Notes under the pieces: model-generated
What the model saw: the letters and a program-made list of their open reading frames with translations, nothing else
What the model was told of the DNA's origin: nothing
Database searches by the model: none
Assembly (NCBI GenBank): GCA_047495785.1
Contig: JBLDXI010000009.1
Span: 5,270,001 to 5,334,000, forward strand
From: Lepidodermella squamata
Lineage: Eukaryota > Animalia > Gastrotricha
Length of the DNA: 64,000 bases
Reading direction: 5' to 3'
Part shown: piece after piece, positions 7,319 through 59,292 of the stretch
Layout: the number at the start of each line of letters is the position of its first letter
Numbering within the stretch: the stretch's first letter is position 1
Program-made: the position numbers and the translations under genes

Positions 7319-8937
7319 GCAACCAGTGAACGCGTTACCTGTGATTTTTTTCTATCAATAATCATCTCGTTTTTTTTCGGAAGAAAACATTCATCTATAT
7401 ATCACTTATTGGTTTCGAGGGAAATTAAATGAACAAATACGTGCTCTTATTGTGGATTTTATGAGACACCCTGTGACCTAGGAAAATTGCGATTTTTCAC
7501 GGGAAAAAAGACATTTTTTGTTGGCTGAATGATGAATAATGATTTTTTCTGTTTACAAAAATTGATATCTGCGAAATATTATAATATCTTCTGTTATTGT
7601 CATTTTTTCGTATCGGTTTGTTATAACAATGAATAATCTTCTGTAGGTTATATTGTGTTGTAATTATTTATAAAATCATTTTATGCGAAAACTATTGAAT
7701 TCCGGCTTGTCGATGATCTGCTTCGTATATAATAATGTACCATAATAATACAAAGGATCAGCGGCTTGTGTGCAACGAATTTTTAAAAAGTGACTAGCAA
7801 CTTTGAAAGGAACAAAAGATGCTTGGATTGATATAATACTGAGGAGAATAAAAGAAACGAGCCTGAAGATATTATCCTAGAAATGTGTGTTTTTGCTAAT
7901 TTTTCAGGCGGTTTATTGTCCAAATACTAAGAATCACATGTCATCAGATAGTTTTTGTAATGAGGAACATGGGATTTTTTCATATTTTCAAATCAGGGTT
8001 GTGATCGAAGAGAAAAGTGCATTTTTTTGGCTGGGCCCATGTTCTCCTTTGGTAATTCACTTCATTCGGCGCACTTTACGAACAAAAGTAGGATAGATCT
8101 CTCTGCAGCGATTCTTTGCGATTGAACGGATTAGCAATTCTTGATTGGAAGACTATAAATATCTGCATGAGTATTCCCGGCTTAGGGGGTGTCTAATTTC
8201 GGGGATTGCAAATTGCACCAGTTTTTTTATAAGTTAGCTCCCCAACTACCTAATTACCAAATTTCTAATTTTTACCGTCAATAAAGGTTTTTTCCGGTAA
8301 TACTTAATGCCTCAAAACTAAGGCTAACAAGTAATTTTGTCTGCGTCGCTTATACGAATAAGACGAATCATCCTGACATTAATAAACCAAACGATTGCCT
8401 TACCGTTAACAGCGGCTCAGTTCATGAAAAGCGCCCTTCGTGTGCTTGCTTTGGGTCAATTCATACTGAGACATGTGAAGTATCCAACTTCATGTGCGGA
8501 GTCGGATCCTTCTTTCAGGTTCTTTCAGGCATATTCTCAGATCGATGGGTCACCACTCTGGTTTTTTAGGGGATTCTCGCTGGGTTACGGTACCCGCCTC
8601 GCCCCCTGTACACTGCATTGAAATTTGAAGTAGATTAGATTCGACTACCCTTACTTCGGTAGTACTTCTGGCATCGTAGAGCTCTGCACGGACATCGCAT
8701 AACGTACAAAAACATACGGCTGACATAAAAGTAGTGAAAGGGACAGACCACATGGGAAAAACTAAAACGCTTAATAATTGAGAAGTTGATGATATAATAT
8801 ATTATGATAATGACAGCTGAAAATACTCATTTTGATCCCTGGTGGACCAGCTCAAAACGAAGGAGCGAGCTCATTCAAATCTTCATCATTTCAAATTCAC
8901 TTGTTCTTTACACATCAATTAACAACTTTTATTCGAA

Positions 8938-14409: not shown

Positions 14410-14522
14410 TATTTTATTTTGCATAGCATCGACATTCTGATTGAGTGTAAATGATAATTACGATCAGTACGATCAGTGCTCAAAAAACCGAACTTCTTCT
14501 TAAATAAGCTATCGTGATAACC

Positions 14523-14748
14523 TATTGAGGGTGATACTTGAGCCTCTGCCCCGAAATGACATAAATTCATGATGAAGCCATGGACTTCTTGCCTTTTATG
14601 TGTTCCTGAATTTCTGAAGCGATTCAATGTGCTTAATGTGTGCATCGGCTTGGGCATCAAATATATTTTCCAGATATATTTTGATTGGCTGAAAGCAATT
14701 TTTCGCAAGTTTTACTTTGTAGTTACGGTCTTCAATTTTGCATATAAC
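14523..14748 (-). repeat. Inverted diverged copy of the region downstream of PAN gene C (continues at 24314-24350)
   Basis: Reverse complement of 25681-25951, interrupted at ATATAAC by the 14749-24313 insertion. Confidence 0.75.
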
Positions 14749-15631
14749 CAGGGTTTTTTTTAAGATTTCGTTTGGTGTTTACAAAATCTTGTTTGGTATT
14801 TACACATAAAAACCTTAAAAACTTTGCGAATTAGCGAATGTACTGAACTTCCCGGCGGCTGATTTGGCATGCCCCGTACCCCGTTTTTTTGACAGAAAAA
14901 TTCGCGGAAAATTCCATGTCAAATGTTTTTAACCTTCAATATGCTGCATTACTTAGCATGGTCGAAATAAGAATACATATAGCATATCTACCTCCGCGAG
15001 CGAAGCGAGCTTTAGCTAACGGTTTTTTTTCTATAATTTTAGTTGAAAATAGTCTAAAATTGATTCGACATTACGAGTGAATGATTTCTTGCTGCAACTC
15101 TCGCGGCCCTGCAATTTTGAAAAATTTCCTTTCCCCATACTAAATCACCCTTATCAAACCTTAGGCGCCACACCGATTCTCGTGGTGTTACGCAGTGGTG
15201 CGCAGCGAGCGCGCGCGGGCGCACACAGCGGCGCTGTGGTGTTCCTAGTACTCACGCATTTGGCTATCTGAGCCCGCTTCAGAGCCAGATTTGGCCCACT
15301 CGCTCTACATGTTTAAACCCGAGCGCGCGCGGGAGGTTCGTGATAATTACACACCATCAACTCAGCGATGATCATTTAAGCACGAGAAGATCGTTTCATT
15401 TATTATTATTAATTATTGCAAAACACTATCATATAATTGCAGCTTTTCCCGCAGTTGTGTATCAAATTGAAAATATATTAACATTTTTTGTGTTCTACGA
15501 AAACACCAGTGCGAAAGAAACAGTAAAAACCGTGGTAGATTCTTCTTTTTTTTACGAAAACATCATGGTTAGAGAAACGGTAAAAAAGCGATGATGAAAT
15601 ATAGACGGCGACATATCAAGTGCGAAATTTA

Positions 15632-17842
15632 TTATTTCTTCGATTTCTTCCTGGCCAGCAGTTTCCTCGCTTTAGCAACAGATTTCGCAGCAGCATGGAC
15701 CTGGGTGTCACCGCGTCGCGACTCAGGGTGCAGCAGCGCGTTATGGCGATCGGCCTCGGCCTGCGACTTGAATGACCATTGGCATCCTTGGTAAGCGCAA
15801 CGGCGGACGGCCTTATTTGGGTAGTACTTATCAGGTAATGCGAAAAGGAAACGCTGTTGCTCGAATTCGAGGTAGTGCCCAACCCGCGTTGTTGAGGGGA
15901 CTGGGTCTGGGATTCCGTATTTATTGACGTAGTTAAAAAAACCGCTCTCAGCCTTTGGTTGCTTGCTGCAGACGGAGCACTTTTCCCGCTTTTTCTCGTC
16001 GCATCGTTTGAAAAAAAGAAAACCGATGCGCCGATCAGTGTGTGCACACATTAGCCGCAGTTCGGCTTTTAACGATTCTTGCGAACTGCTGAATCGCCCA
16101 GAAAGAATGCACTTCCGCTCCTCTTCTGACACGGCCTTAAACACAGGTTGTCGCAGCTCGGTAATACAGCGCATCGGTTTTTGAGCGTAAAGCTGACCGT
16201 TAATCGCAGCCCGGACACGTTCAAGGGCATTTGTCGCACACTCAGCACTTTGAGAAGGACCAGGCGGAAATTCGCTGGGTGGCGCGGTCGATTGTCCCAC
16301 GCACACCGTATTCGCGCGACTCCAGACTCGCTCGATCGGATTAAACGCGCTCGCCCCTGCCGCGTTCTGCGTCACCACCAAGGTTTCCAACTTCTGATCT
16401 AAAAAGAAGCGCCAATAAGCCAGCGCGTTGACAGCGCCGTCCGCAGTGTAGTCAGTTCCGCCATCGACGATTAAAATGACGTTGACATATCCGGGATGCT
16501 CGGGCATGACGTGCCACTTCATGTCCGAGATGTGGTCGAATACGCTGTTTTTCGAGCCAAATAGCGGGCAGCGATTGACAATCGTGATAGACTGATCACA
16601 TTTCCGCTTGTCATTTCCACCAACAAATTCGAGATTTTCTTGGCACAGATAGCCGGCCGGTATTATCTTCAGATCCTTATTGGGGTCAGGAAAATCGTGG
16701 TCAGAAAAATTCGGGGCGCTGCCAAGCATGTAGTAAAACCTGAGCGATGAAAAATATTAAATTATATTTCCGAGAAATTAATTTCAGAAAAATGCGCGAA
16801 TAATAATGCTAAATTTTAAGAGTTTTAAAATATAATAAAAAATGTTTACCTATTGCGGCAACGTCGACTAACAATAGGTCCACCGATGTTGATTTTGTTT
16901 TTCGTGTCAGCAGAGATGATCAGGACATTCGACTTGTTCTCACTCGCGATCTTGAAGAGTAGCTTATTGCGCCCTAGGTGCCAATGAACAAGGTCATCAT
17001 TCGCGCGACGGATGGTGCACACCAGTCGTTGAACTTTGAGCGAAATTAGCCCTTTGTAATCTTTTGCAGCTCTTCTGCCTCGATGAGGTGCAACGAGAAG
17101 GCGGCGTACGCTACTGTTTGAGCATTTGTATCCTTCCTAAAAATAATTATATAATTATAATTATATTAAAGCTATTTAAGCTATTTATAATTTTTTAGGG
17201 TGAGTACAAATGTGTCCCTTGAAATTAAATTAAAACGCCCCATTTTTGTAGCCGAAAATAAACGAGTGCACACTGGTTGCGTAATACGCACCAACAATCA
17301 CACAACGCCACGCTATATAAGTAATAATAAACCGCGCGCAGAATATACGTAAAATATGCCGTCTAAAATAAATCACGCCGCCGTATTTTCAAGTACATAT
17401 TACTTGGAAATACAATGCAAATTTGATTATCTTTTATGATATAATTTAGTCTGAAACTTATAACGAAAGATCGCGCGCTTAAAAGTTGACGCGCAAAATA
17501 TTGGAAAGAGGATAAAAACATGACAATAACAACAATAACAATAACAATAACAATAACAATAACACTAACCTTGAGCAAATGATCCCGCATATCGATAGTT
17601 CGCGTGGATATTGTTAAGTCAGGGCCGTGGCGGCGTGCAGCTGCCTGAATTCGGTCCGCTAAAAATCGGTTCAAGTTGTCGACGAGGCCGGTTTGCTCTT
17701 CGATGCCGGTTCTTCCGACGCGCGTGCGTTTCTTTGGCGGCGTGCCGTCATTTTCTGACGACGGTTTTGCTCGTTTTCGCGTACGAATAGGCATATTCGC
17801 AAGGTATGCAGTGATTTCTTTCGTGGCACGTGAGTTAATCAT
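15632..17842 (-). CDS. Zator/TP36-like DDE transposase; complement(join(15632..16739,16850..17136,17570..17842)), 555 aa
   Basis: In-frame GT-AG splices. Motifs SADTKNKINIG, FSDHDF...KIIPAGY, LIVDGG, NAAGASAFNPIERVWS; C-terminal C2H2 finger CAYQGCQWSFKSQAEADRHNALLH. Confidence 0.8.
17523..17563. repeat. (AACAAT)n microsatellite in transposase intron 1
   Basis: Direct reading of the hexamer array. Confidence 0.9.
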
Positions 17843-17973
17843 TTTTCAAATTTTCAAATGAAAGAACATAATGATGTCTAAAGGGACCTCCATTCTCGCG
17901 GACCAATGGCTATTCGGGTATTCATCCGGTTGAATGTGATTGGTCTGTTACGCATAAGACCGGCTTTTCTTAT

Positions 17974-20900
17974 GGATCTGGCTATTCGGACACAGAATTG
18001 TGTGTCACGCAATTGCTATTCGGACACAGTGTGTTTGCGTGACTGGCTACTCGAACACAAGTGGTGTTAAGTGGTGTGTGCGCGCTTTTGGCTATTTGAA
18101 CACACGCTTTAAAACCGATTAAGACACCATGTAACAAAGCGGAAACGGTTTATTAACCCATTTCTCTAGCCATTACTCAAAATACAAAAAAGAAACAAAA
18201 AACAGTAAGTTATTTTTTACGGTTGAAGGGCATTTGCGGCTTCCCTTTCATGCGACCAGAGTCCTTCCCTTGTTTAAAACTAAGGCCTTCACCTGGTAAG
18301 TAGTCAGTCGTTGTCGGGCGGAGAGGAACTAGTTCGACTTTGATTGCTGCACTTTTTCCTTTCTTCGGCTTGGACGGAAACCGGCTGAGCTGGCGATCGT
18401 TGAAACACTGCAAGAGGTGGTGACGCATGGCGGCCGGGTCGAAGACCACTCGAGTCGGGTCGTTACCCGTCAGAATTTCGACACAATACGCAATGGCGTA
18501 AACGCCGCAATCAAAGCCATTCGACTGCTGAGGCACCGGCAAGACGTGGACGCTGATGGCGCCGTCAACAGCATGCGCGGCGTATCGTTGGGTGATTTGA
18601 GCTTTCAGCGATTCGGATAACGGCCCGATCAGGCTGTTCATCAGTTTGACACCAGCCGGTAGCTTGCCGACGGTTATCGTCGTAGTGGCGACCCAGTGGT
18701 CCGACCCGCAATGATGTAGTTGAACGGTTTCTGCAGTGGTAGGCGGAAACTGCAGTTGTGACAACAGCGGCGTAGCAGCATCAACGCCCTCGGCCCGCAT
18801 CATGCTGAACAACTTGTTCGCCGCGTGCATGTGCTCGTCGCCCAGGTAGGTGTCGGTGCGCAGCACGAGGTAATCCTGCTCGCGCAAGCCGAGCTCGTCG
18901 GTGATTGGTCCCGGAAGTGACGAATGAGCGTCAGCGGGCGCACACGGCGCATCAAAGGCGGCGGGTTCCACCGGTGACTGTGTCGGCGTGTTGTTGATGT
19001 TGTTGTCACCCGGTGCCTGCTGCTGCTCGCCCGGCTGCTGCTGCGCGCCCGGCTGCTGCTGCTGATCCTGACGAGGCGTCGCTTCTTCATCACCCACCGG
19101 AAGGTCCTAAGAAACCGGAAGGTTTAGTACACTCGCAAACAAAGCAATAAAACAAGATGTAATTACCTTCACAACGATTTCGAAATTTTTCTGGGCTCGA
19201 ATCAAGTCAGCCAACTTTTCCAATTGCGAATAGTATCTGTCGAAGACACGATTTGGGTGTTGCGAGGCGAGGTCAGCAATAACCAGGGTCAGCTGTGACA
19301 TTTTTCGATAACGACCGGCGTTATCAGCCGGTCTGCGCCCTGCTCTCGGCTTGAAAGTTGTTTCGGTGAATCTGTAGGCCGCGAATTCTGCGTCGAAATC
19401 GGCCTCAACCGGTCGAAAGTTGGCAGCGACTGGCTCGCCCCCGGTGACCGGGCGAATAAAATCATTGAAATACTTGCTGTGGAACAGCATCTTGTCAAAC
19501 AACGGCTCTTCGTGCTTCGATCGTAAGAACAAGATGTGATGACACGGCATGGCCATGCTCATGTAAAACGTGCAGGAGCACTTGCTCGGCGTGGTATTAT
19601 AGTCTGCCTGATCGCCATTTTCGAACTTTTCGCGAACACCAACGCCGTGAACCAAAGCCATTGAACGAGTAACGGATCGCTTCAACGAGCCGTGAAATTC
19701 CGCCAGGGCATAGCTAAAAAACAGCAATTTTACAAATTTGTCCACAAATTCTGAAAATAACTTACGATGAAATTTCGTAAGACGCTTTATCGAGCAATTG
19801 TTCAAACTGGTCACCTCGGCGAACAGCGCGCTTCACAACGGTTTTCTCGGCCCGGCGGCGCTCGATAAACGAAATCAGAAACGGAATGAAAACTGGCATC
19901 GGTGGCTTGGTTGAGAAGCCGGCGCACATTTCTTCCTTCAAGGAGCCGAAAAATCGTTTAACGCGTCCAGTCGTGTTAGTGAGCATGATCGGGTAACTGC
20001 GGCGGGCGAAAAGGGCCCACATTTCGACGCAATTCAGCCAGTTGCGCTCGAAATAATCGGCCAACGGCTGCTCAGCCGTGCGCGCGATTTTCACGGTGAC
20101 GTGCGGTTGAACCAGCGCACGCCAACTGCCGACGGCCGTTTCGAAAAACTCCTCGCGCTTAGAACCGACCATCGCCTTGAAACCGTCGAACACTTCGCAC
20201 TTGAATTGCTGCAGGTCGTTGACTTCATTGTTTCGAATCGTAGCGATGACGTTTCTCATATACTTCAAGGCGTGGAAAATGCACAGCAAAATGATACAGT
20301 CCGGAAATATTTCGCGGAGTATGTCAATTTGATCAAAGTCTTTGTCAACGATAAAAAACCACGGCCCAGCGCCATACAAATTCTTGAACTCTTGCAGCAT
20401 GGACTTGACATTTTGCGAGCGTTCGTCAGCTAGGAGAGACACGCCTGCGACTCGAGTGCCGCCAGTGAGAGGACAGACGTAAACAAACGTACACAGCTTG
20501 TATTTTTCAACATTTGTCTTGAAAGTCGTATCAAGTAAGATGGTGTTCGGCTTGAGCTTGTTCATGTCGTTAATCATCGACGGTGTCGCAATGAAGAGCA
20601 CGTCGACGTTACCGTTCGCGTCACGGGTGGTGCGCACGATGCCGTCGCCCTCCTGCACAGCTGCCAGTGTCTCGTCCAGAACACGTCGGCTTTCGTCAGG
20701 GCTGATGCGGTGTTTCTGTAACAATAACGGCGTAATTAGCTAAATTCGGACAGGCATTAGGCTTATTTACCTGGGCTAAATTGTGAATTTGCTTGGCGGT
20801 GATGAGCTTGTTGGTTTCATTGCTCACATGATGGGCGATCGTCGACGCTTTCGCATTGTTCTTCAAATGGGACAGGATCTCAGCCTTCTTCGCCTCGTCG

Positions 20901-21556
20901 AGTTTTCGGTTGAAACAGTAGGTGGCGTACCGCTCCTCCGAGATGTCGTGGCTATGGCAGCGCACGACTTGGTTGATTTTCATCTGCCCGTCCTTCGTCG
21001 CAGTGCCGGTGATTTTTGCCGGACAAGCCAGGTAAGCCAAATTTTGATTCGGACGCTCGCCATTGGTGATTTGCGCCTTACGTTTATAGCCATGAGTACA
21101 AATGAGACGCAGAGCAGACTTGTCAGTGCCACGGCTGATAAACGGCTCCAAAGTTTGGTCCCGAAACCGGGGTAGCCAATTGTCCACGATGTAATCTCGA
21201 GACGGAAAAACGTCTCCTGGTTTTATACTAAGCTCACCTGATTCAGTAGACATTTCAGTAAACATTGTTTGAAAAGTTAAAAACCGGACTACCCAAGGCG
21301 CCCCCTTTTTATTCTGCGTTGTTACTCATCACTTCCGCTTTAATTACCGCTCAATAATCACCCAATCATTGCCTTATTAGCGGAATTACAGCGCGGCGCG
21401 GTGTGTGTTCAAATAGCCGTTTCCGCGCACACACCGCTGTGTTCAAGTAGCCAATCACGCATACACAGTGTGTTCAAGTAGCCAAAAGCGCGCACACATT
21501 GTGTTCGAATAGCCATTGCGTGACACACATTTCGGTGTGTCCGAATAGCCTCGTCC
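17974..21556 (-). mobile_element. Mutator (MULE) transposon nested in the Zator
   Basis: Termini GGATCTGGCTATTCGGACAC and GTGTCCGAATAGCCTCGTCC; subterminal GGCTAYTYGAACAC repeats; perfect 9-bp TSD TTTTCTTAT at 17965-73 and 21557-65. Confidence 0.9.
18210..21265 (-). CDS. MULE transposase-SWIM-Ulp1(C48)-like protease fusion; complement(join(18210..19106,19167..19713,19766..20715,20771..21265)), ~962 aa
   Basis: Three 52-60 nt GT-AG introns join four ORFs in frame. FAR1/WRKY-like CPAK..HSH domain; LLDTTFKTN, IVDKD, LLCIFH; SWIM CSC..PCHH; protease HW and QQSNGFDCGVYA. Confidence 0.85.
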
Positions 21557-22161
21557 TTTTCTTATTAATTATTAATTACCATCTCAGTCAACCATCATTC
21601 ATGTTCGCCTACGAGGCGCCTCATCATCGGCCTGAAATCGCGACGAGACGTCATAAAGTCCGATTGAGTCGTATTTTCCCGCGCCCAAAGTTAATAATAT
21701 TGGTTGACCGTCATCGCGGCGGCGGCCGTGAAATGAAACCGCGCTGTGTAAACTTGCAGCCGGAGTAGTAGCCGGCTGCATCAAAGATTGCTGCAGCCGC
21801 AACTTGTCGCTGCTATTAAACGTTAAAGTATCACACTTTTGATACCCGCGAGCGAGCGAGCGCGCGCACGCCCGGCTCGGGCGCGCAAAACCGCCCGCGC
21901 TCATGAAGCGGATGCGATGAGATATTATGTAGTAGTATATGTGATATAACATAACTGCGATCAAGTAGGCGATAAAATTTAGCGTACAAAGAGTTGCGTT
22001 TAGCGCCAATTTTTCGCGTTAACCTGGGCATTTTTGTTGTTTATGCTATACAGTATATTATCTGCTGCATTGTTGTTTGCGTTTATTTATGATTGTAATT
22101 CAAAAATTCTCAATTTATTATTCACGCTATTAGCCTTCTTCAATATTTCATTTGATCTCTC

Positions 22162-23391
22162 ATGGCGTCTTCAACCGCTTACGTCCCGAAATTCGAACAC
22201 TTCAAGTCTGCAAAATACGTGAATTTCCATGGCGATACCGACCAGAAAACGCTTTACGCGAGCCTCGTTTATAAGGCTAGCCACGTACCTGCAAACTACA
22301 AGCAACAAGCGAAAGCCGGCAAGTCGAAAGGCTTGCGTGTTTGCTACTGGCCTCACACTAACGAGGCGTTCGTGGCCAGCAAATTCTACAGCACGGTGCC
22401 GAGTGACTGCCAGCTATCTTCACGAGATCAGCCTCAGCCCAGTCAATTCTGGCTCGATTTTCTTGAAGATAAGAAACAACGCCGCGTTCCGAAAAAAGCC
22501 GGGCATGTTGACGAGTCACAAGTCAGCGAAATCGGAGATGAATCACTGTCTTCATCACGAATGTCAAGTCCTACCTCACGAATGTTCGACGGTGAGAAAT
22601 CATCATCGCCTGCGCCGAGGCCAAAACCTAATCTCGAGCTCCCGACATTTTTCCAGCCTGAGTCTAAATTAGCACCAGCAGAATTGAAAATGATGAAGGC
22701 CGACTTGCTCTTCAGCATTCGATCTCAATCTCAATTTACCAACGACGTAGTTAAGAAAGCCGTTGATGCTGTTGATGTCAAAATTCGAGCTGAAATTGCT
22801 GTTTCCAACGAGGCCATAATGGCAAAAATCACCGAATTACATAACATGATGGCTCAGTTAATTAAGGCGGCGCCGCCTCGCGAGGCGATTGACGCGCAAT
22901 CCGTGCCTTTATCCGATGACAATCAAGCCGAAGACGAACGTACTCTTGGCCAAAGCGTCATCAAAATTGATAAGAAAGGCGAATTGAACGGTTTTTTCGA
23001 TGTTGGTGGTGATGAACGTTTCCCGATGCGAAAGCGAGATTATCACAATATCCTGGCGTCCTACTCAGAACAGGTCGACATCCTGGAAGCGCTGCTCAAG
23101 TACTTCATTGCCGAATCAGATCGATTCGATAGCGACGGCCGTCCATCGCTAACACACAATCACGACCTTTTTACCGCATGCACGTCCGAGGTGTATAACA
23201 ACAACAAGCGCTATGCGGCTTACGTCTACCGCACACACATGAAGATGTTGATCGACAAGCGCGTGGCTACTCGTCAAGTGCGTTCGACGGCTAAAAGTCG
23301 CACTCCCGCTGCACGTTCGACGAGTTCGCGTCCTCAAGCAGGTGCATCATCCGGGCTGAGCAGCTATGACGACCTCTCATCCAGCAACTGA
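22162..23391 (+). CDS. Zator passenger/accessory protein, 409 aa, unknown function (possible PWWP-like + coiled coil + BEN-like)
   Basis: Long uninterrupted ORF wholly inside the Zator TIRs, divergent from the transposase. Heptad region aa ~195-236; helical C-terminal domain EALLKYF...LFTACTSEV...MLIDKRV. Confidence 0.75.
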   Translation: MASSTAYVPKFEHFKSAKYVNFHGDTDQKTLYASLVYKASHVPANYKQQAKAGKSKGLRVCYWPHTNEAFVASKFYSTVPSDCQLSSRDQPQPSQFWLDFLEDKKQRRVPKKAGHVDESQVSEIGDESLSSSRMSSPTSRMFDGEKSSSPAPRPKPNLELPTFFQPESKLAPAELKMMKADLLFSIRSQSQFTNDVVKKAVDAVDVKIRAEIAVSNEAIMAKITELHNMMAQLIKAAPPREAIDAQSVPLSDDNQAEDERTLGQSVIKIDKKGELNGFFDVGGDERFPMRKRDYHNILASYSEQVDILEALLKYFIAESDRFDSDGRPSLTHNHDLFTACTSEVYNNNKRYAAYVYRTHMKMLIDKRVATRQVRSTAKSRTPAARSTSSRPQAGASSGLSSYDDLSSSN

Positions 23392-24354
23392 GTTTGGCTA
23401 TCGCTATACCTTTTGTCATACGTACCTACTTATTGTACCTACTGGCTCTCGCGCGCTTTGATTTTATCTAATTTAAATATCACTTCCAATGCGCAGATGT
23501 TATTAATTTGAATAGTTTTTTTTATCTGGCAAAATATGGAAAACATCCGTGTTGTAAAGATATCGTGAATACTGTTTTGCTTTTTTGTTGTTTCCTCTTC
23601 GTTTTGTGTTTTTTGTTATTGATGATTGGGTGAAGCGACGGGTAAATACTTTGTTGCTATAGAAGGTTGTTGCTTTAGAAAAAGTTCATGGTTGATGATT
23701 TGCTTAACATTTTAATCTGGTTATGTCTTTTCAATTGAAAATGCCGGGCGAAATTTTGTGAAAATAAAAAGCGGTAATGCGATTTGTTGTACTCGTACAG
23801 TAAGGCGGATAAATTCACAATAACTTGCATAACACCACACGCACGAATTTCGCGCGAAAGCGCGCGCATCCGCGTTTGAAAACTCGCCAAGCGCAACCTC
23901 GCTCCGGAGAAGGCTCAGATAGCCAAATGCGTGAGTACTAGGAACACCACAGCGCCGCTGTGTGCGCCCGCGCGCGCTCGCTGCGCACCACTGCGTAACA
24001 CCACGAGAATCGGTGTGGCGCCTTATTCCTAAATGGACTTCATCGACTTCACCTTCAAGAATGACTATCACAGGAGCAGTATGTTATCATTTCATGATGT
24101 TTAATTCGAGAAATTACCCAACGGCGAGCGAAGCGAGCTTTAGCTGACGATTTTTTCCAAATTTCAGCTCTGAAAATGGTCTAACAAAGCTTAAAAATTA
24201 CCCGTAACTATCCCGTCAACTCCTCATTTAGGGGCGATCTAAGATTTTGGTGTTTACACTTCACCGTTTTGGTGTTTACTTTGTAAACCTGTAAACCCCT
24301 TAAAAAAACACTGATATAACTCCCCTTCTCTTCATGTTGGCCGAAGCGTGTTAT

Positions 24355-27606: not shown

Positions 27607-29046
27607 AAGAAGGAACTCCACCTAGTCTTCATCGATCTCGAAAAAGCCTATGATCTGGTGGACAGGGAAAAAGTATGGGCCGCCCTCCAAAATATGGGTG
27701 TAGAACCCAGCTTAATTGAAGCTATTCAAAGTCTATATAAAGTAAATAAAGTTGCTGTTAGAGTCGATTCTGAGCTCTCAGATTTCTTCTATGTTACCAG
27801 GGGACTAAGACAGGGTTGCCCGTTGTCTCCTTTGCTATTCATAGCGACCTTCAACAAAATTTGCGAAAAAATATCTGCTGAAAAATTAGGCTTTCCTATT
27901 AGCGAGACCGCAAACAGCGAGACCGCTATGAGCGAGACTGATTTCCTAAATTTACTAGCGTTTGCTGACGACGGAACACTTTTAGGCATGAACCACGACG
28001 AAATTTCACGACTACTTCACATTTTCGATTTGGCTTGCACCGAATTGGGTCTGAAAATTAACGCGGCAAAAACTCAATATATGATTATTTCTAGGGACGA
28101 GTCAGCCACTCAAAATTACGAATTGGAATTGAACGGGAAAAAACTTGAAAAAGTGACCAAATTTAAATATTTAGGGAGCATTATTACCAGTGACGGCAAA
28201 ATCGATGAGGAACTAAACTACAGAATTTCTAAGGCAGGCAGTGTTTTCGGCGCCATGAATAAATTCATGTGCAACAAAAGTCAGGTTTCCATAGCTACAA
28301 AACTTAAGGTACTGACATGTGTTATAATACCTACCATCATTTACGCCTGCGAATCGTGGAACATATCGATAGCCCAAGAAAATAGACTAAACACTATAGA
28401 ATATCGTTGGCTTCGATCTATAGTAGGTGTCCACCTAATGGACTATATTCCAAATATAGACATTCGACTTGCGTTATGCGGAGGTCTCATTGAAGTGAGC
28501 CGCATTGTTGAAAAACAAAGGCTAAGATATCTAGGGCACATAATTAGGTCACGTGACTATGACGTAGAAGGACTAATACACAAAATATATATTTGGACGC
28601 CTCCGCTTGGGTGGTTTGCACCCAGAGGTAGACCTCGAACCAGATGGATCAACGGAGTGCATAGAAGCCTAATTAAAGTAGGTCTTACTAAGGAAATTCG
28701 CCGGAAAAAGAAAACCAATAAGAACAATAAGGTCAAAGATAAGAAAAATAAAGCCACTAAGAAACGAGAAAATAGAAAAAATCCCGGCGAAAAGGATTTT
28801 GAGATCAAAATTATTCCCGATGTCCAACTAGCGGAATCGGTTTCTTTTGAAAAAGATGAATGGCGCATGGTTGTTAACTCGATTGAAATTACGAATTCTA
28901 TACAAAAAGCAGAATCCTCGACTGTGGGGGTGGGTGAGGATCATTCTTCGCCTGCCTTCGCCCTCTTCAAAACCGGAAACGGTACACGACGCTCAGTCCC
29001 GAAGAGGATAAATAAAAACATTATTATTTATATTATAATTCAATGA
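27607..29046 (+). mobile_element. 5'-truncated RTE-like LINE reverse transcriptase ORF
   Basis: FIDLEKAYD, GLRQGCPLSPLLF, AFADD, FKYLGS, RLRYLGH and RGRPRTRW motifs. Confidence 0.9.
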
Positions 29047-40717: not shown

Positions 40718-43700
40718 ATGTCGCTGCCAGCCGCTTCAACTGGCCACCAGCGCCAACGTTTGGGCTCGAAAACTTCGTCGACCTCGCCGCAAATCGGCAG
40801 CGCCAACATCACGCCATCGACCCTGCTCACCCCTCTGAGCCCGCCTCTGGGTGCTACACCAACCCTACCCGGCGCCAATCCTCTATTGGTCCTGCAACAA
40901 CTCGTCCTACTTCAGCAGCAGCAACAACAGCAACAGCAGCAATTAGCCAGCCTTGGCTTGTTGCCAAATGCTGGAAATACCGAACTGGCGTCGCTGCTGT
41001 TCGGTAATTTGATGAAGCCGCAACCAGCTCCAGTTGTGGCTCCGTCGCCGCTGTTGGGCAATCCGTGGTCGGATGGTGATACGGCGGGCGTTTTGTACCG
41101 AAAATCGCTCGAACAATTGCTGGCCCTGCAACAGCAACAACAGCAACAGGTTCCGGCTCATTCTGGGAAACAACATAACATCGCAGAAAATGGTGAGATT
41201 TTTTATCTTTTTTTTCAAAGTCAATAGCCTAGTTTTTTTATTTTTTTTAATTCTAAAGTCATGATGGTTTTTGAATTATCAATAATTATAAATTATAAAA
41301 TTCGGAATTTTGGTATAATTTAGAATTTATTTTGAATTCCAATTAAAATTTAAGTTTTCGTTTCACCTTGGTTCTGCGACTGGAATATAATAGGCTTATT
41401 AAATTTTCTAATATTTCTAAAAAATTATTCCTTTTAAAAATTATCCGTTGAAATAAAATTCTGATCCCTTTTCGAAATTTTAAGTTTTTTGGCACCTTGA
41501 TGGGCGCAATTTTTTTCGTTCGAGCCCAAGATTTTCGGTTATACTTATTGGCGCAAGAGATTTCGCGTTAGCGCCGACGCGCCGAAGCAAAGCGCGCGGC
41601 TGCGCATCAATTATTCAAAAATCATCGCCTGCCTAGCTCGTTTTGTCAACGGTTCGGATTTCAGTCGGCCTCAAAGGCGCTGTGGCGCGGCGCCATTTAG
41701 TCAACTTATTTTGCCGAAACCCGAACTGCTGTGATACAAATACGGCGCACAATCTCAATTTCCATAATTATTATTATTATTATTATTTCTGTGACCATAT
41801 ATAGCTATCTTGCTACTGATTGCTGATTTGTGGTCTGCGTGTGCGCGCGCAAAATCTGCCCGCAAACAAATTACGCGGCGCGCGCATGCAAATCCGCGAA
41901 ATCCGAGACGTGCGGCTGCGCGCGGCTTTTAATAAACCGCTGCTAATAAGTAACCATCCGAGCTATCACATCTCTAGTTCTGGTTATACACCGAAAACCA
42001 GCGCAAAAAAATGAACCGTTTTGCTTTGAACTCATCGCATCTCAAAATTGACAATATCAAGTTCGAAAAGGTTAGCAAACAAATTAGGCGAAATTACTGA
42101 AAGTCGCGATTGGGATGACACAGATCGAAAAAATTGGATTAATTTTACGAATATTATTCCAGTTCCTTTCATTAGATATTTTCCCGCTATTCCTTTATTA
42201 TTTGGTTGCGAATAATAGAAAGACGAGAAGAACTTGGGTATTTCTCAAACAAATGACTACAACGGCTGAATAAATATAATTTGAACATCGGAGAAGTAAC
42301 CGGAAATTTCTAGAAATTTTGACGAAAAAAAATTTCCAGTGCAAATTGGACGCAAAAATGCGATTCCAAAATTTTAAATTTGTTTTATAATGATCTCAAG
42401 TCGGGGAAAATTCCGAAAATTATTAGCTGGAATCGGCCTGGCTCAGCGTGATTCGGAAAAAACACTCGAAAAAATCCGGAAAAATATGAATAATTTATTT
42501 AGACTTAAATTGGGTCAAATCAAGTAATTTGCCTGTGAAAAATGATTCTCCGAAATTCTGAAATTCTGTGTTTAATTTTATGCTTCTAAATAATTCCTGA
42601 ATTTTGCTTTCATCCCTGTGATATATTTTTTCTAATATTTTAATTTTTTTTTTAGTTGATCCTGGAACTTCAAACAGTCGCGATGCCCTGCTACTGCCGT
42701 CACCCTCAACCACCGCCTCATCGACCTCGCCGCCGTTTGTCGCGCCCCGCCTGCCATCGCCGCAAAGCAGCAACAACCAAACCGCAACTACAACAACCAC
42801 AACCACCGCCTCAACCTCAGCCTTCCCAGACCTGTGGCGATTCGAAGCCCCGGCTACAACCGCCGTAAAAACCGAAGAAGCCCCCGCGAATTCGCCGCCC
42901 ATTCTCGCAAACGCCCTGCTACAACACATGCTAATGCAGGCTCTACAGCGCGATCTCGTCAACAACCTACTCGCGGCTAGATCACCCGAGCTGGCCCCGA
43001 CCCCAGTCTCAACCTCATCGCCACCCCTGTTAACACCATCCCCAATCAACAACAACAAGCGGCATTTGAAGAACTCGGATGAAAAAGCCGCGAAAAAGCC
43101 GAAACTCGAGAGTGAAGATCACGAAATCGATGAGACAAATGAAGGGCAATTCGAGTGCTCGCGTTGCAGCAAGTTCTTCGCGACGGCTCACGGGCTGGAA
43201 GTCCACGTGCGCCGCACCCACTCAGGGCGCCGGCCCTTTGCTTGCGAGGTGTGCAATAAAACGTTTGGCCACGCCGTGTCGCTGTCGCAGCACCGCGCCG
43301 TGCACACGCAGGAGCGGTCGTTCGTGTGCCCGCAGTGCAACAAATCGTTCAAGCGATCGTCGACGCTGACGACGCACCTACTGATCCACTCGGACACGCG
43401 GCCGTACCCGTGCCAGTACTGCGGCAAGCGGTTCCACCAGAAGTCTGACATGAAGAAACACACGTACATCCACACGGGCGAGAAGCCGCACAAGTGCCTG
43501 CAGTGCGGCAAATCGTTCTCGCAGTCGTCGAATTTGATCACGCACTCGCGGAAACACACCGGCTTCAAGCCGTTCGTGTGCCAGTTGTGTAATAAAGCGT
43601 TCCAGCGCAAGGTTGACCTGCGGCGGCACGCCGAGACGCAGCATGGCGCCAACTCGGCGGCGGCGATGCTGAACGCGAATCAAGTCCCGCTGCCGTTGTC

Positions 43701-43899
43701 GAACGCCTGCTTCTCGCCGTTGCCGCCGAATTTCGACGAGGACGAAGACGTGGAGGAGGGCGAAATTTTGGACATGTCGCGATCGTCGTCTGTCGCTGTT
43801 AACAATAATGACCTGGAAATCGACGACGACGACGACGAGTCGATGTCTCAACAACAACAACCACCTGTTGAGGAAGACGTGGTGGTGAAAGCTGATTGA
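40718..43899 (+). CDS. Gfi1: Gfi1/senseless family C2H2 transcription factor; join(40718..41192,42656..43899)
   Basis: Six diagnostic fingers ([62 protein letters not shown]). Phase-1 intron joins the Gln-rich exon 1 in frame. Confidence 0.92.
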
Positions 43900-44130
43900 T
43901 TGATTGATTGATTTACGATTATAAATAATTTATTTGTTTCGTTTTTCATCTTCATCATAATTTGTTTATTCATCATGATTTCGTGCGCGTCTGGTGTAAA
44001 TTTGCGATATAATTATACCTATTTCCGCGATATATAGGTCATGACCCCGCTTTAATATATTTATTACTATAATAGCCGCCGTAATAATGATTGTAAGAAT
44101 GATGATTTCTCAACCGCGCATCAATTATTA

Positions 44131-45069
44131 CCGTCAGTTGGGGCAATCTGGGTCATTGGGGCTATTCGGACGAATGTTCATGCAAACGGGAGAATGAGCA
44201 TGGCTCCAAAACTACCCGGCCGTTAGCAATGAAATTTTGCACGGAGTTTGGTGGAAAGACGACCCACATGCCATAAAAATTTCATGACCTGAGAGTAAGT
44301 GGTTGTGAAGATATGAGCTTACCTTTCAGGTGTGAGTTAAACTCAGTTTAAGCACTGTTCTGCGTTGAATTACCTGGACCAGATGAGAATTTTGCTGGAC
44401 CTGCGATCAATTTTTTCTGAACCTACAGATGATAGGGCACCCATGAAAATTTAAACCGCCCCGATCCGACTCATACTTTTGTCTAATTAATTGCGTCCTT
44501 TTAGCCCCACGGAAAAATGATGTTGTGGGGCTATTCGGTCTGCCATTTGAATATGCTAATGAACTGCGTTGTTCAAACGTTCCTGGCTGATTAAAGCGGA
44601 CTTTTACTTCATTTACAATTTAATTTTTGAATAAGCTGGAAAGACTGCAAAATACTAGTGTTACTGGCCTACGACATTGCCAATTAATTAATTACGACTA
44701 TAATTGACAAATAATTCAACTAAAAATCAGTGTTTTAGTTTGCTCAAATTCTTGGGCATACAAATAATAATAATAAAATTTTGCGGAAAAAAATTGCTCC
44801 GCGGCGTGGACTCGAACCCTGCTGTCGTACTTTGCTATGCTTTCTAGAAGCACATCCAAAGCCACTCGACCACTGAACACAGCATATTAGCAATATTTGA
44901 ATTGAATATTTATGTATAATTAATAGCCCCACACCTGTCCGAATAGCCCCATCCGTGGGGCTATTCGGAATCCTGGTTCCATTGGAATCAGGACCTTCTG
45001 AAACGTGTAAAAATGCAAAAAAATCAGGGGGTAATTTTTTTTCGCCGTCCGGATAGCCCCAACTGACGG
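44131..45069. mobile_element. pogo/Tc1-type non-autonomous element just 3' of the Gfi1 stop
   Basis: TIR CCGTCAGTTGGGGC; TA TSD; internal GGGGCTATTCGG repeats. Confidence 0.8.
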
Positions 45070-47567
45070 TATTGCTATCTCTTTTATTTATACCACAGCA
45101 TCATAGTAAATAATATTATATTATTATGAATACCTTTACCGATAAATTCGTGTGTTAATATTGTTATTATATACAAGATCTTGATTCGGTTTTGTTCAGA
45201 ACAAAAAATAATGGCAATCGCAGCAATAAAAATTTGTTTCTATTGAAATTTGATGCGACTTTTTTGCGCTGGCAATCAATTTACTTATTTGGTACATTAC
45301 AGGTGTAATACAAAAAAATTTTCGCGCGTGAATGAACGCAGACTTTCACGGGGGATGATCCTAGCATATTATTATAGCATGCCGCTATAAATGGTAAATT
45401 TTGCCGGTATTTATAAGGGGTTATTGAATGCAGAATTATGATTCAAGGGTCGTAATAGTTGCATCCCCGAAATTAAGGTTCCATCACTAAATTTGAGGGT
45501 TCCAGCACTATGAATTTTCCTATTTTCGTTGGATTTTCGTTAGTAACCTGTAAAAATTCGAATTCAAATATAGAGATCCGTCTAATTAAAAAAAATCCTC
45601 TTGAAATAACCTCTTATATACTCGAGGATATTTAGTGCCGGCCTCACATTTTGAAAAACTTCAGCGTAGTAAAATGTCCGGATTACCACATCATATTTAG
45701 CCTCTTCATATTGCCCACATTATTGTTAGTTTTTTTTACGGAACACCTATCGGGACCGATATTCCCTCAGGAACAAGTAAACAATGGAACAACGGCAAAT
45801 TATGTCGCTCTCTTCCTAATTTTAATAGTTTTACATTTTATCGATTCTTCCAGGTTTGCAGTTTTTTAATGTACAGCTTTGACCGCAACTAATCACCAAT
45901 TGCCATTTATTTTTGGTATCAAAACTCAACTTTTAAAGATTTGCAAATAATATCGGAATATTTAGACTTTCAAGTGCTTAACCATGAATTTCGCTCCAAT
46001 TATTTCCCTTGTTTATTTAACCTGAGGGCAAGTCTTGGAAATCACTAAGTTTACCTTCGCCCTCAACTAATTTACTGCAAAGCCTAAGGGCAACCCCGAG
46101 AAATTTACTCGGTATTGCTATTAAAAGCTTCGGTAAAATTATCTCCTTGATTTATCGCGAATATTTTCAATAAATTATTCATACGCTACGTCTCAAGAAG
46201 TTTCTTGGCATATTCGAAATTATTCCGAATTTTTTTCCATTATTTATTATTAAGCCAATTATCACGGCTATTTTTTTCCACTATTTTTTAGCAGTGCGCT
46301 TTTTTGATCACGTGCCATATTAGCTACTATGTATGATTAGCAAATATTTTCTTGTTTCCTAAGCCTCACGACTATAAGCAAAAAAATGCCCGCCTCATGG
46401 GATGCCTCGTTCTCCATTCCGTAATTATGCCGGAAAAACAGCCGACGTGAATGAAAAGAGGAAGCAGAAAAAAAAAACTACGACAAATCTCAAGGCAAAC
46501 ACGGCAATGCGCTCATTTACGACCGCACCACCGTTGGGACCGGAAAAATTTAGCAGAAAAATAGGAAAAATGTATAGACAGCGGCAGGAAATGCGGGAAC
46601 CATAAAAATCCACCCTAATATTGTAGTAAAAGGAAAGATCCACTGCCACTCGAATCCATTGCTACCTAAGGGATCACTTTTTTTGTTAATTTTTATTTAT
46701 TGTATAGTGCATATCCATTTTTTATTACTCTGACCTAATTGGCTGAGACTATAGGTATGCGCGTGCCTCGATAAAGAACCTCGGAAATGGACCGCTCAAA
46801 TAGCTGTCAGTTTTAATCGGAAGTATGTTTCCTTTCTAGATTCATTTTCGGCCCGTACATTCCATCTATACAAAATTTAGACTAGTTTTTCAATATTACT
46901 CTGTGCGGAATATTATAGGTGTGTTGATAATTCAATCTTTGCATGTCTGAAGTGTGGATATTGCTACATCGAATTTGCGAGGCGGTTGGGCGGAAAATGT
47001 CGCATCACCTGAGACTTGATTCTTTCTTAGGTGCACTAAAACAGGGAATTATTCGATTTTCGAAAGTCTTATATATTCAACGAATTCTCAATTTTTCAGA
47101 TGAATTTCGTCGTCGTATCGTCAGGTGTGATTTCCTATGATCAAAGAATACTGACCTATAGTTTCCCAATGGGAGTGGGCAACCTAAATTTAAGGTTCCG
47201 GCTCTATAGTTTGTCAATTGTTTTTGAATTTCAAGTCTTCCCTAAATTTTCGACGCGGATTATCGGCGGTCAGTTTACGCATTATAAATCCGCCTGCTAA
47301 TTCTTATTATCGATTTCAAAAATCAGTGATCTTCCAGCATTGAAAACGTTTCAGCTGTTGGTACCAGGTCAGTTACTTGGATTTGATTCGACCTCATTCG
47401 CTGATTTGCTTTACACACGATTGTTTTACGGCTATTTCGCAATGGCCTGTAATGATTTAGCCTTACTGATTTACAGCTTATTTGGAGTTTTTAAGCTATA
47501 GTCCACGGGGATCCCTTATTTTAGTTGCTGATCAATTATATCCCTCTGAAAAAATAGATCCGACATA

Positions 47568-56359: not shown

Positions 56360-59292
56360 ATGCTGCTGCCGGGCGTGAGCGGCTGCCTGGCCGCTGTGCA
56401 GACGAGCAGTGGTGGTGACAAGCCGGAAGTCAGCAACCGGACATCGCGGCCGTATCTTCGAGCGACGAGGCCGAGACGCAGTTCGCCTTGGCTAGTGCTG
56501 GCTCGCGTCATGCTCTTCTCGAACGCCTCCATGCTATGCATGATGTTGGGTAAGTTCAATCCCATAAAATTCAATCCCTAAATCAACTCGCACTCATGAT
56601 CCGTTCAGTTCATCATTAATATTCCAATTATAATACTGATTCCGTAGATTGGTAAAAATTATGTTTTCAATTGCAATGGGACCCCACTTGGCACGGTACA
56701 GTTGTCCGACAGGGAAAAATTGGTGGCAAAATCTGAGGTATGGAAAGAACGGTGAAAAATCAGCATTTCAAACTTCGAGGAGGGATCCATTAGTCAATGC
56801 GGGATGATAATGTGATACAATCATGAAATCTTACGAGGGATGCCTTATGTGGTGGGGTTGTAGGTTGTGGGTCTGAAGATCCCGTGGTCGATGGAAAAAT
56901 CGTGAAAATTGTAGTTTATACTAGAGTAACAACATTCTATCCTAGGATCTTGATCCTTAACCACTCATTCCTCATTTCTCGTTTTTTAATTTCAGTGCAA
57001 GGGTTCAAGTCGACCCTATCGCCGACTGAAGAGCCTACGTCACTTATGAACAGCGACCGCGGTCGGCAGGTGTTCCTAGCAACCAACACCATGCCATCAG
57101 CGAATCGCTACCTGCAAGAGAAAAGCGACGACACTCTGACTACAGCACCTACAACCACAACAGAACGAGCCGCGACGTCACGCCCGTCGACGTCGGCCGA
57201 GCATAAGCTGTACGAAACGCTGTTCAAGCGCTCGCTGTACCAAAAAAACGTCCGCCCGGTGCAGAACCATCTGCGTTCAATCAAAGTCCGCCTCGGTGTT
57301 TGCGTCATGACCATTGACGAGATCATTGAGAAGGACCAGACTATGATTACTTCCGGATGTATTAAAATGAAATGGAGCGATGAATTCTTGCAATGGGCAC
57401 CCGAGGCTTACTCAAATCTAACATGGCTCGTCATGCCTTCGACGGAAATTTGGCTGCCGGATATCGCCCTGGTCAATTCGCCAGATCCATATACAATTAC
57501 GAGAAAACCTGCCTTTGCTGAGGTGACTAACACCGGGCAGGTTGGCTACTACCCTTCCGGCCGTTTTTCGACACGTTGCGCCATTTCGCTGCTCTTCTTC
57601 CCGTTCGACATTCAAAAGTGCGAACTCCGCTTCGAGTCTTGGGTGTACCCGACTCAGTGGCTGCACATCGAGCCGTGGGAGCAGAACCCGATAGATATGA
57701 AGGACTTCTATCGCAACCACCAGTGGGACCTGGAACGCGTGTCGGCGATCCCGGGCAACATCAGCTACGACGGCCTTGACTTTTCGACGATGCGTTTCAT
57801 TTTCTACTTCCGGCGCCGCAGTCTCTACTACTCGGTGCTGTCTATCTTCCCCGGCGTGCTCATGTCCATGTTGCAAATGTTTAGCCACACTCTGCCCGTT
57901 GAACATCCAGGTAAAACATATTTTTTGTTTAATTTTTAGGCTACTATAAGTAACATCGAGAAACACCTTATTCTTGATATCAAATTATGTTCAAGTTCAC
58001 ATTCATGATTATTCTACGAAAATTGTTTCAGTTCAGCTGCTCACTGACCCTCGCAGTTATTGGGAGCGTAGTCGTTATTAGTTTGCGTACATCCTATCAA
58101 GTTTCACAATGGGGATATATAGGGCAGGCGGAAATTGGACCTAGTGATCCCGTAGAGGTTTGGTTTTCTCATCGTCAGGGGAATAATCATGCAGTGCATT
58201 TGATCACGCCAAATGCAACTTACACTACGCCTCAAATGCGTTGAGGGCAGTTTTTCCCACTCTATTCGATAAAATCACGGAAAACCAGTTTGCTCTAGGT
58301 ATGACTGCAGACTGATTTAGGGACAAAAAATCAAAAGGGCCCAAAATACTTAAATAAACCTAGAGGTAGAAAAATCAAAGAAAGAAATTTAGGAATTTAG
58401 GAAAGACTAACTTGTTTCTTCTACTTTTTCAGCTCGTATGACCCTGCTAACTTCGTTGTTCGTGTCAGCTTCCGTGTTGCAGTCCTCACTCGCGTCACAG
58501 ATGCCCAAGTCCAGCGACGGCATATCCCTCATTCAGATGTACCTGATGATTTTCAGCTCGAACCTCATCATATCCATGGTTGTCACCTTCGTCAACATGC
58601 ACGTATGGTTCCGCGTACCACTGGCCGAGGTGCCAAATGCAATTCGCATGCTACGGTCTTACCTCCTCGATACAGGCGGAACAACAGGCCGGCCTGTTGA
58701 AAAACCGCCCGCCGCTGAGAAGCCAACTCCAGCCAGTGCGTTGAAGGGCAGTCGATTAGCGGCGTCAGGGGGCCCAGTTGGTCCCTCGATCTCAGCAGGG
58801 TCGATCGCAAACCAGGGTGATGAACCGTCGATGAGTCGAGTTAACGAAATGGGCGTGCCCCAGTTCGTTAATCGAGCCGATCAAACCGAGGACGATGAAG
58901 CTGCATCCTTAGTCGTGAGCTACTGCTGTGGGGTTGTCCGGCACCGGACTACAGTCAGCGGCCGGCGGCGAGGCAATCGCCGGTTCTCTTCAGACACAGG
59001 AGGCGGTTTGCTTCGAAAGCGGGTGACTTCTAGTTCAAAGCCGCCGAGCAAATCACCGCCACCTGTTTCAAAACCTGCTGATTCAACAGCGACCCCGGGT
59101 AAGAAGCCGCTCGCCTCCGTCGTTCAAACGGTGCAGAGCCAGCTGACAGATCGCAAGGAGCGGTGGCTGCGGTTTTCGATGAAAGTAGACAAAGCTTTCC
59201 TATACGCAATGGCCATTTTCAACACAATATGCCCGATCACAATTTTTCTCATTGTGCCACAATTTCAGACGTACAATGACGGCGAGATGTAG
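56360..59292 (+). CDS. Cys-loop ligand-gated ion channel, non-alpha nAChR-like subunit; join(56360..56549,56996..57910,58433..59292); start codon uncertain (alternative 56510)
   Basis: WLPDIALVN, Cys-loop CAISLLFFPFDIQKC, FESWVY, RRRSLYY pre-M1, four TM helices, M4 preceded by MKVDK. Two phase-1 GT-AG introns keep the frame. Confidence 0.88.

Follow-up and report, generated by a model that had tools for sequence, protein, structure and literature searches.

The window analysed here is a stretch of 64,000 nucleotides (64 kb) of contig JBLDXI010000009.1 from the gastrotrich Lepidodermella squamata. At positions 15164-24022 it contains a DNA transposon whose terminal inverted repeats (TIRs) enclose two genes, a three-exon transposase gene on the minus strand and, head-to-head with it, a second open reading frame (ORF2) on the plus strand. 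A Mutator-like element (MULE) is nested between the two. The original prediction, made from the sequence letters alone, had described the locus as a two-gene Zator transposon with long TIRs. Our analysis supports a structurally complete cut-and-paste transposon of the Zator superfamily, an assignment made through the profiles of relatives, the predicted fold and the target site duplication (TSD), with a tree drawn from the transposase family itself. The overall reading, a Zator element that carries ORF2 as its accessory gene, is held with moderate confidence. The features of the locus are as follows.

15161-15163, no strand: left TSD copy TTA; the flank ...AACCTTA lies directly before GGCGCC
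15164-15274, plus strand: left TIR of 111 bp, from repeat search and direct comparison; terminus GGCGCC; GTGGTGTT twice
15633 and 15404: AATAAA, for the transposase gene
15632-16739, minus strand: transposase exon 3, with the second catalytic D in VDGGTD, the E in NPIERVW, a Cys-rich region, a C2H2-type finger and the stop codon
16850-17136, minus strand: transposase exon 2, with the first catalytic D in SADTKNK and GT..AG borders
17570-17842, minus strand: transposase exon 1, with a basic N-terminus and a putative helix-turn-helix region
17843-17973, no strand: left part of the intergenic region between the two divergent genes
17974-21555, minus strand: nested MULE, foreign to the Zator element, with TIRs, MULE-type ORFs and a 10-bp TSD
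21566-22161, no strand: right part of the intergenic region, upstream of ORF2
22162-23391, plus strand: ORF2, an open frame of 409 amino acids (aa), with AATAAA at 23763
23912-24022, minus strand: right TIR of 111 bp, exact counterpart of the left TIR
24023-24025, no strand: right TSD copy TTA

Boundaries of the element and the nested MULE

A direct comparison proved the two TIR arms to be exact reverse complements over 111 bp (15164-15274 and 23912-24022), and the repeat search, which tolerates mismatches, extended the pairing to 15163-15291 and 23895-24023 (129 nt, 95%). Both termini read GGCGCC and are directly abutted by TTA, giving the arrangement TTA/GGCGCC...GGCGCC/TTA, in which a 2-bp TA duplication cannot be read so as to suit both ends. 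Hence the identical 111-bp TIRs and the TTA duplication of the original prediction were confirmed. Each arm carries GTGGTGTT twice, at positions 19 and 73. The absence of any difference over 2 x 111 bp only bounds the age of the Zator insertion to roughly ≤1% divergence. Of the recent mobility that had been proposed from the perfect TIRs, the insertion within about 1% divergence holds, mobility itself is plausible only, and the MULE has landed inside since. Within the 64-kb window the Zator element and the MULE each occur once, and no paralogous empty site for the Zator insertion was found.

The flanks of the insertion contain a direct repeat of 64 nt (~83% identity, core GCGAGCGAAGCGAGCTTTAGCT) at 14996-15057 and 24124-24184, situated about 150 bp to the left and about 100 bp to the right of the element. 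The Zator target site may therefore lie within a short dispersed or tandem repeat.

The MULE is flanked by a 10-bp TSD, CTTTTCTTAT, at 17964-17973 and 21556-21565. Its TIRs of 70 nt are made of roughly 31-nt repeats, and its minus-strand ORFs match FAR1, MULE, the RNaseH-like domain of ZSWIM1-3 and Peptidase_C48, an Ulp1-type protease (Pfam matches PF10551 at 2.5e-10 and PF21056 at 1.2e-16). A MULE transposase domain, long TIRs and a duplication within 8-10 bp are the features expected of the MULE/Mutator group. The nested insertion had originally been placed at 17974-21565; the insertion as such stands, the boundary does not, as the MULE comprises 17974-21555 and the remaining positions are one copy of its TSD. 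Without the MULE and this TSD copy the Zator element is 5,267 bp long, and the divergent intergenic region between transposase and ORF2 measures 727 bp without the MULE. Both genes start downstream of the MULE, the transposase with its ATG at a distance of 131 bp and ORF2 at 596 bp. The element had also been called apparently intact, which is right for its parts, all of which are complete, but the element is interrupted by the MULE.

The full sequence was contained in one public sequencing run only, probably that of the source sample. Copy numbers were mapped in this run over window positions 18100-24099 (6,000 letters), and all depths given in this text refer to it. The stretch from the right terminal repeat of the MULE to the right Zator TIR (21527-23941), which includes ORF2, forms one unitig with an even word depth of 48.7. 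Since this stretch is a single unitig at that depth and no second contig was found at ≥80% identity, the exact element looks single-copy. For the TIR region additional contigs with about 91% identity were present at depths of 64-98, showing related TIRs elsewhere in the genome. The body of the MULE reached a word depth of about 339, which is some sevenfold the value of the ORF2 stretch, and thus several near-identical copies of the MULE exist.

A sediment metagenome run (X2) yielded two 151-bp contigs identical to window positions 23643-23973, between ORF2 and the right TIR. According to this, DNA of Lepidodermella squamata or of the element is present in an environmental sample.

The core of the MULE TIR repeats, GGCTATNYGRR, occurs 13 times in the window (0.65 expected). 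Each Zator TIR has a site at its inner end (15262-15272 and 23914-23924); others are located at 17908-17918, 56 bp to the left of where the MULE inserted, at 36538 and within 44160-45058. A site for a shared host factor, a target preference or chance may account for this recurrence. At 44129-45071 an inverted repeat (23 nt, 91%) flanks about 940 bp with four motifs resembling the MULE TIR, and this segment may be a non-autonomous MULE derivative.

The transposase and its assignment to Zator

The coding sequence of the transposase (1668 nt, 555 aa) is composed of the three exons listed above, joined across GT..AG introns and not interrupted by a stop. The exon model was confirmed by collinearity with P0002, an uninterrupted relative of 550 aa, over residues 12-524 (tblastn, 5e-50). 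An exhaustive phmmer search of 1.84 billion representative proteins revealed 199 relatives at E values ≤1e-3 (39 at ≤1e-10, best 9e-30, ~30% identity). The named ones stem from Ptychodera flava, Diadema and Antedon, the others from metagenomes and run assemblies. A word-indexed protein search with exon 3 gave no match. In a maximum likelihood tree the transposase pairs with P0001 (support 99/98) and groups weakly (82/75) with sequences from Ptychodera and echinoderms.

In an alignment of 20 sequences the catalytic residues D (SADTK), D (VDGGTD) and E (NPIERVW) fall into the conserved D, D and E columns of the family. The family motifs around them, S.D.KNK, DGGPD and S.FNPIE..W, read SADTKNK, DGGTD and SAFNPIERVW in the window transposase, the spacing from the second D to the E being 43 residues. 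Further conserved motifs are HDFP, a Cys-rich block (C...C.HC) and a terminal C..C..H..H finger. The intact three-exon transposase with its D, D and E and its C2H2 finger, as originally described, is borne out by these data.

A subgroup of the transposases has, upstream on the same strand, an extension that is conserved, measures about 430 aa, contains a coiled coil and is without a Pfam match. It is fused in frame with the transposase in L005 (479-3905), L007 (436-3384) and L008 (739-3945), and forms a separate ORF in L004 (8223-11449). A further profile scan revealed two loci only, both of the fused type. That ORF2 is a free-standing form of this extension was rejected (hhalign probability 0.1%).

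For superfamily assignment 51 of the 199 relatives were scanned with profiles. The bacterial ISAzo13 model NF033519 was matched by 21 of them (best 6.9e-10) and PF07592 by 16 (best 1e-6), all below the curated cut-offs; the ISAzo13/TP36 matches shown per member cover the region from the second D to the E. With IS630 being matched by two relatives only, ISAzo13/TP36 is the sole recurring transposase family. Models of Harbinger, hAT, piggyBac or other transposases were matched by none of the 51. The scores below threshold fit the published statement that Zator lacks Pfam similarity (PMC5751038). Searches of Pfam, NCBIfam and PDB sequences with pieces of the window transposase gave nothing useful, and relative P0017 had no match in a tblastn search of plasmids aimed at annotated ISAzo13 genes. 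Against the assignment stands that the window transposase itself showed no direct match to the ISAzo13 models, so that the link runs via its relatives.

An AlphaFold (AF2) model of P0002, calculated on a 51-sequence alignment, was confident, with a predicted local distance difference test (pLDDT) of 90.3 and a predicted template modelling score of 0.82. Its closest folds in the PDB were Mos1, Sleeping Beauty and Metnase. Zator is considered to be derived from TP36 and to be the sister of the IS630-Tc1-mariner group (PMC7386202). For Zator-1 of Branchiostoma (Bao et al. 2009, as cited in PMC7386202 and PMC12905397), TIRs of 33 bp and TAA/TTA duplications have been described in amphioxus (PMC12905397). 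Of these two duplications TTA is found in the window element and in a related element of Ptychodera flava (L002), and TAA in one of Antedon mediterranea (L010). The termini likewise start with GG, reading GGCGCC in the window and in the Antedon element, GGGAGG in the Ptychodera element and GGAGG/GGGGG in L004. GG termini are regarded as typical of Zator. Taken together, the ISAzo13-type relatives, the predicted fold similar to Mos1 and Sleeping Beauty and the 3-bp TWA duplication support membership in Zator, in agreement with the TP36/ISAzo13-type transposase originally proposed.

ORF2 and the second genes of related elements

As stated in the original prediction, ORF2 is an uninterrupted frame of 409 aa divergent from the transposase gene. 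It is intronless and lies in DNA with a GC content of 46%, and the poly(A) signal 372 nt downstream is still inside the element. At 409 codons in DNA of this composition we estimate the frame to be too long for chance. The prediction gives it a beta-rich domain at the N-terminus (residues 10-85, pLDDT 60-76), then a Ser/Pro-rich linker, then a long coiled coil (172-236) and, towards the C-terminus, a helical domain (291-378). The ESM language model gave DUF4806 and BEN as leads (0.86-0.89, below the reliable level). Neither a BEN domain (PF10523) nor a Myb/SANT domain was matched in Pfam at E values up to 10. A fold search with the ORF2 model (pLDDT 43) returned generic coiled coils only.

Three related elements carry a second gene inside their TIRs, and ORF2 is most likely an accessory gene of the window element. 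The first one, L002, is a 13.5-kb element of the acorn worm Ptychodera flava (CM083789.1, 8694-22245) with 85-nt TIRs (93%; 8694-8778 and 22161-22245), the terminus GGGAGG and TTA on both sides. Its TIRs enclose transposase P0003 (10001-12312, plus strand) and, on the opposite strand, an annotated gene of 492 aa (14509-17283); both are annotated as uncharacterised host genes. The last exon of this partner contains a coiled coil and a BEN domain, preceded by a Pro/Ser-rich region; the BEN domain matched 74 of the 76 positions of the Pfam profile at an E value of 6e-4, narrowly missing the cut-off. An upstream exon is beta-rich and looks Tudor-like by eye.

The second element, L006, lies on a 5.7-kb JGI metagenome contig. 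Its inverted repeats (222 nt, 99%) reach the contig ends, so that the TIRs are at least 222 bp long. Head-to-head with its transposase P0011 it has a two-exon gene for a coiled coil followed by a BEN-like domain, which ESM matched best to BEN families (0.91, 182 shared features). The BEN domain of the Ptychodera partner is linked to this domain at 2e-4 (tblastn). The third element, L009, comes from the sample that yielded L006, of which it is a diverged copy with an unchanged layout; the two agree in about 70% of the transposase DNA and in 52% of the protein sequence of the BEN-like exon. Between these two copies the second gene shows a nonsynonymous difference of 0.29-0.34, compared to a saturated synonymous one of 0.75. 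The second gene is hence under purifying selection and is retained as the elements diverge. Among the five best PDB matches of a profile of the three partner domains, four were BEND6 and BANP.

Thus, two-gene Zator elements with long TIRs exist beyond the window. In the transposase tree L006 and L009 fall into another clade than the window element, and the two-gene state is hence present in two or more branches of the transposase family, which looks like a lasting two-gene Zator lineage. Another relative, the Antedon element L010, is a decayed 4.6-kb copy with 45-bp TIRs and no visible second gene. Across the window element and its relatives the TIRs measure about 45, 50, 85, 111 and at least 222 bp. 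Long TIRs, which had been regarded as a special feature of the window element, are consequently not peculiar to it: the relatives alone span about 45 to at least 222 bp. From the bipartite lineage that was originally proposed, the two-gene relatives with long TIRs could be demonstrated, a significant homology of ORF2 to their second genes could not.

That ORF2 is the accessory gene of the element lineage rather than a stray host fragment is judged probable, by a moderate margin of confidence. Its domain order is that of the Ptychodera partner, and its head-to-head orientation is that of L006 and L009. A BEN-like nature of ORF2 itself is possible and is put forward tentatively, being somewhat less probable than its role as accessory gene.

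The main alternative is that ORF2 is a one-off passenger, either a captured host or foreign gene or an orphan ORF, without a role in transposition and without kinship to BEN; we regard this as rather unlikely. A number of results weigh against the accessory gene, and many of them would suit a passenger. ORF2 has no detectable homologue: no match was obtained in Pfam at E values up to 10, among 5.8 billion proteins in a word-indexed search or in JGI metagenome contigs, and PDB sequences gave nothing relevant and no BEN chain. What resemblance there is to the BEN partners lacks significance: residues 277-319 of ORF2 align with the start of the BEN-like domain of the L006 and L009 partners over 40-43 residues, at a BLASTP E value of 0.018 and hhalign E values of 0.026-0.12 (probability ≤2%; 0.12 against the BEN partner profile), and ORF2 shows no similarity to the Ptychodera partner protein. 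Recognition by ESM is low and the single-sequence structure model is poor, with a pLDDT of 43. The ORF2 stretch is at single-copy depth, without a second copy at ≥80% identity in the run, and ORF2 had no match among the public runs on record as RNA. ORF2 has no introns, in contrast to the two of the transposase gene. Finally, gene order is not constant, being head-to-head in the window, L006 and L009 and tail-to-tail in Ptychodera.

Nevertheless, several observations speak against a passenger. The domain order common to ORF2 and the Ptychodera partner is one of them, and ORF2 also has in common with the partners in L006 and L009 a coiled coil followed by a C-terminal domain, the position and the orientation. 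Nor was a parent gene at ≥80% identity, from which ORF2 could have been captured, seen in the run. In addition, the frame is intact and its poly(A) signal is located inside the element.

It is improbable that the locus is a composite, in which ORF2 came from another mobile element in or beside a one-gene Zator, or in which the TIRs bracket two unrelated elements. The locus has already been struck once, by the nested MULE, and the window also contains a reverse-transcriptase ORF and MULE-like fragments. However, the repeat search revealed no inverted repeat or duplication that would mark ORF2 as a separate insertion within 21566-23911, Pfam gave no transposase, reverse-transcriptase or other mobile-element signature in ORF2, and 21527-23941 is one unitig of even depth. 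Slightly less probable still is that the element belongs not to Zator but to PIF/Harbinger, ISL2EU or Tc1/mariner proper: a 3-bp TWA duplication together with a second gene is typical of Harbinger, and Tc1/mariner has a similar fold and NPIE..W motif, but the window proteins (including the transposase exons) and the 51 relatives are devoid of Pfam DDE_Tnp_4 and Myb/SANT matches, ISAzo13/TP36 alone recurs in the profile scans, and the duplication is TTA, unlike the TA of Tc1/mariner. In this point the original prediction, which had set the transposase apart from Harbinger and ISL2EU, agrees with the absence of Harbinger matches in all 51 relatives and with Mos1 and Sleeping Beauty as best folds.

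Other genes of the window are an RVT_1 reverse-transcriptase ORF, a multi-finger C2H2 gene and a gene for a Cys-loop neurotransmitter-gated channel (27658-29046; 42928-43899; 56884-59292). They show that the window is part of an animal genome rich in mobile elements.

Proposed mechanism and relation to known systems

For a Zator element with ORF2 as its accessory gene the following mode of action is conceivable. The transposase would bind the long TIRs with their two copies of GTGGTGTT per arm, excise the element and reinsert it at TWA, thereby duplicating 3 bp. ORF2 would be transcribed divergently from the shared central region of 727 bp. By analogy, its product could be a dimerising DNA- or chromatin-binding partner that, like the Myb-like protein of Harbinger, guides the transposase to the TIRs; alternatively, it could act as a regulator of the element. 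Insertion of the MULE may have disabled the shared promoter and silenced this Zator copy. More generally, a widespread animal lineage of Zator might be bipartite, with a dimerising partner of the chromatin-reader or BEN type that is needed for transposition or controls it, and with ORF2 as a fast-evolving member. This wider proposal is doubtful at present and clearly less probable than an accessory role of ORF2 in the window element.

Harbinger elements consist of a transposase and a Myb-like DNA-binding protein. The window element resembles PIF/Harbinger in its 3-bp TWA duplication and in having two genes inside the TIRs, the second one presumed to encode a DNA-binding partner. The transposases are unrelated, however, as DDE_Tnp_4 is lacking in the window, and the partner is a Myb/SANT protein in Harbinger but a coiled-coil BEN protein in the Zator relatives. 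With Zator-1 the window element has in common a DDE transposase related to TP36/ISAzo13, TAA/TTA duplications, bounding TIRs and a presumptive cut-and-paste mode, and the predicted Tc1/mariner-like fold of P0002 fits the placement of Zator beside IS630-Tc1-mariner. The TIRs differ, with 33 bp in Zator-1 (PMC12905397) and 111 bp in the window element.

Compared to ISAzo13/TP36, the eukaryotic family additionally has introns in its genes and, in its proteins, an HDFP motif, a Cys-rich block and a finger of the C2H2 type. Mos1 and Sleeping Beauty of the Tc1/mariner group are the closest folds to P0002, and NPIE..W at the catalytic E is found in both families. The window family differs from Tc1/mariner by the 3-bp TTA instead of TA, the 43-residue D-E spacing and a sequence identity of only about 12%; its protein is larger and has extra zinc modules at the C-terminus. 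With regard to BEN proteins (BEND6, BANP, Insensitive), the partners in L002, L006 and L009 end in a coiled coil and a BEN-type domain, and the same layout is predicted for ORF2, whereas ORF2 itself has no BEN match in Pfam or PDB sequences and its BEN connection is a language-model lead only.

Zator is among the least studied of the cut-and-paste superfamilies. The superfamily is known; its variant with a second gene and long TIRs was found undescribed in searchable papers, Repbase lying outside this comparison. Specifically, the searchable literature, in which papers on Zator and ORF2 were covered by title and abstract, contained no description of a Zator accessory gene or of a Zator with a BEN domain.

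The list of bipartite DNA transposons is short and comprises Harbinger, some CMC and some Kolobok elements. If the second gene is conserved, Zator would join them and would provide a second example, independent of the first, of a transposase dependent on a distinct DNA-binding protein. With its intact genes and perfect 111-bp ends the window element suggests itself for a transposition assay and might in time become a genetic tool. BEN proteins are transcriptional repressors and insulator factors of the host. If the proposal holds true, Zator elements with a BEN partner could be a source of the BEN-domain genes that are scattered through animal genomes, and such a transposon reservoir of BEN proteins would bear on the origin of the host BEN genes.

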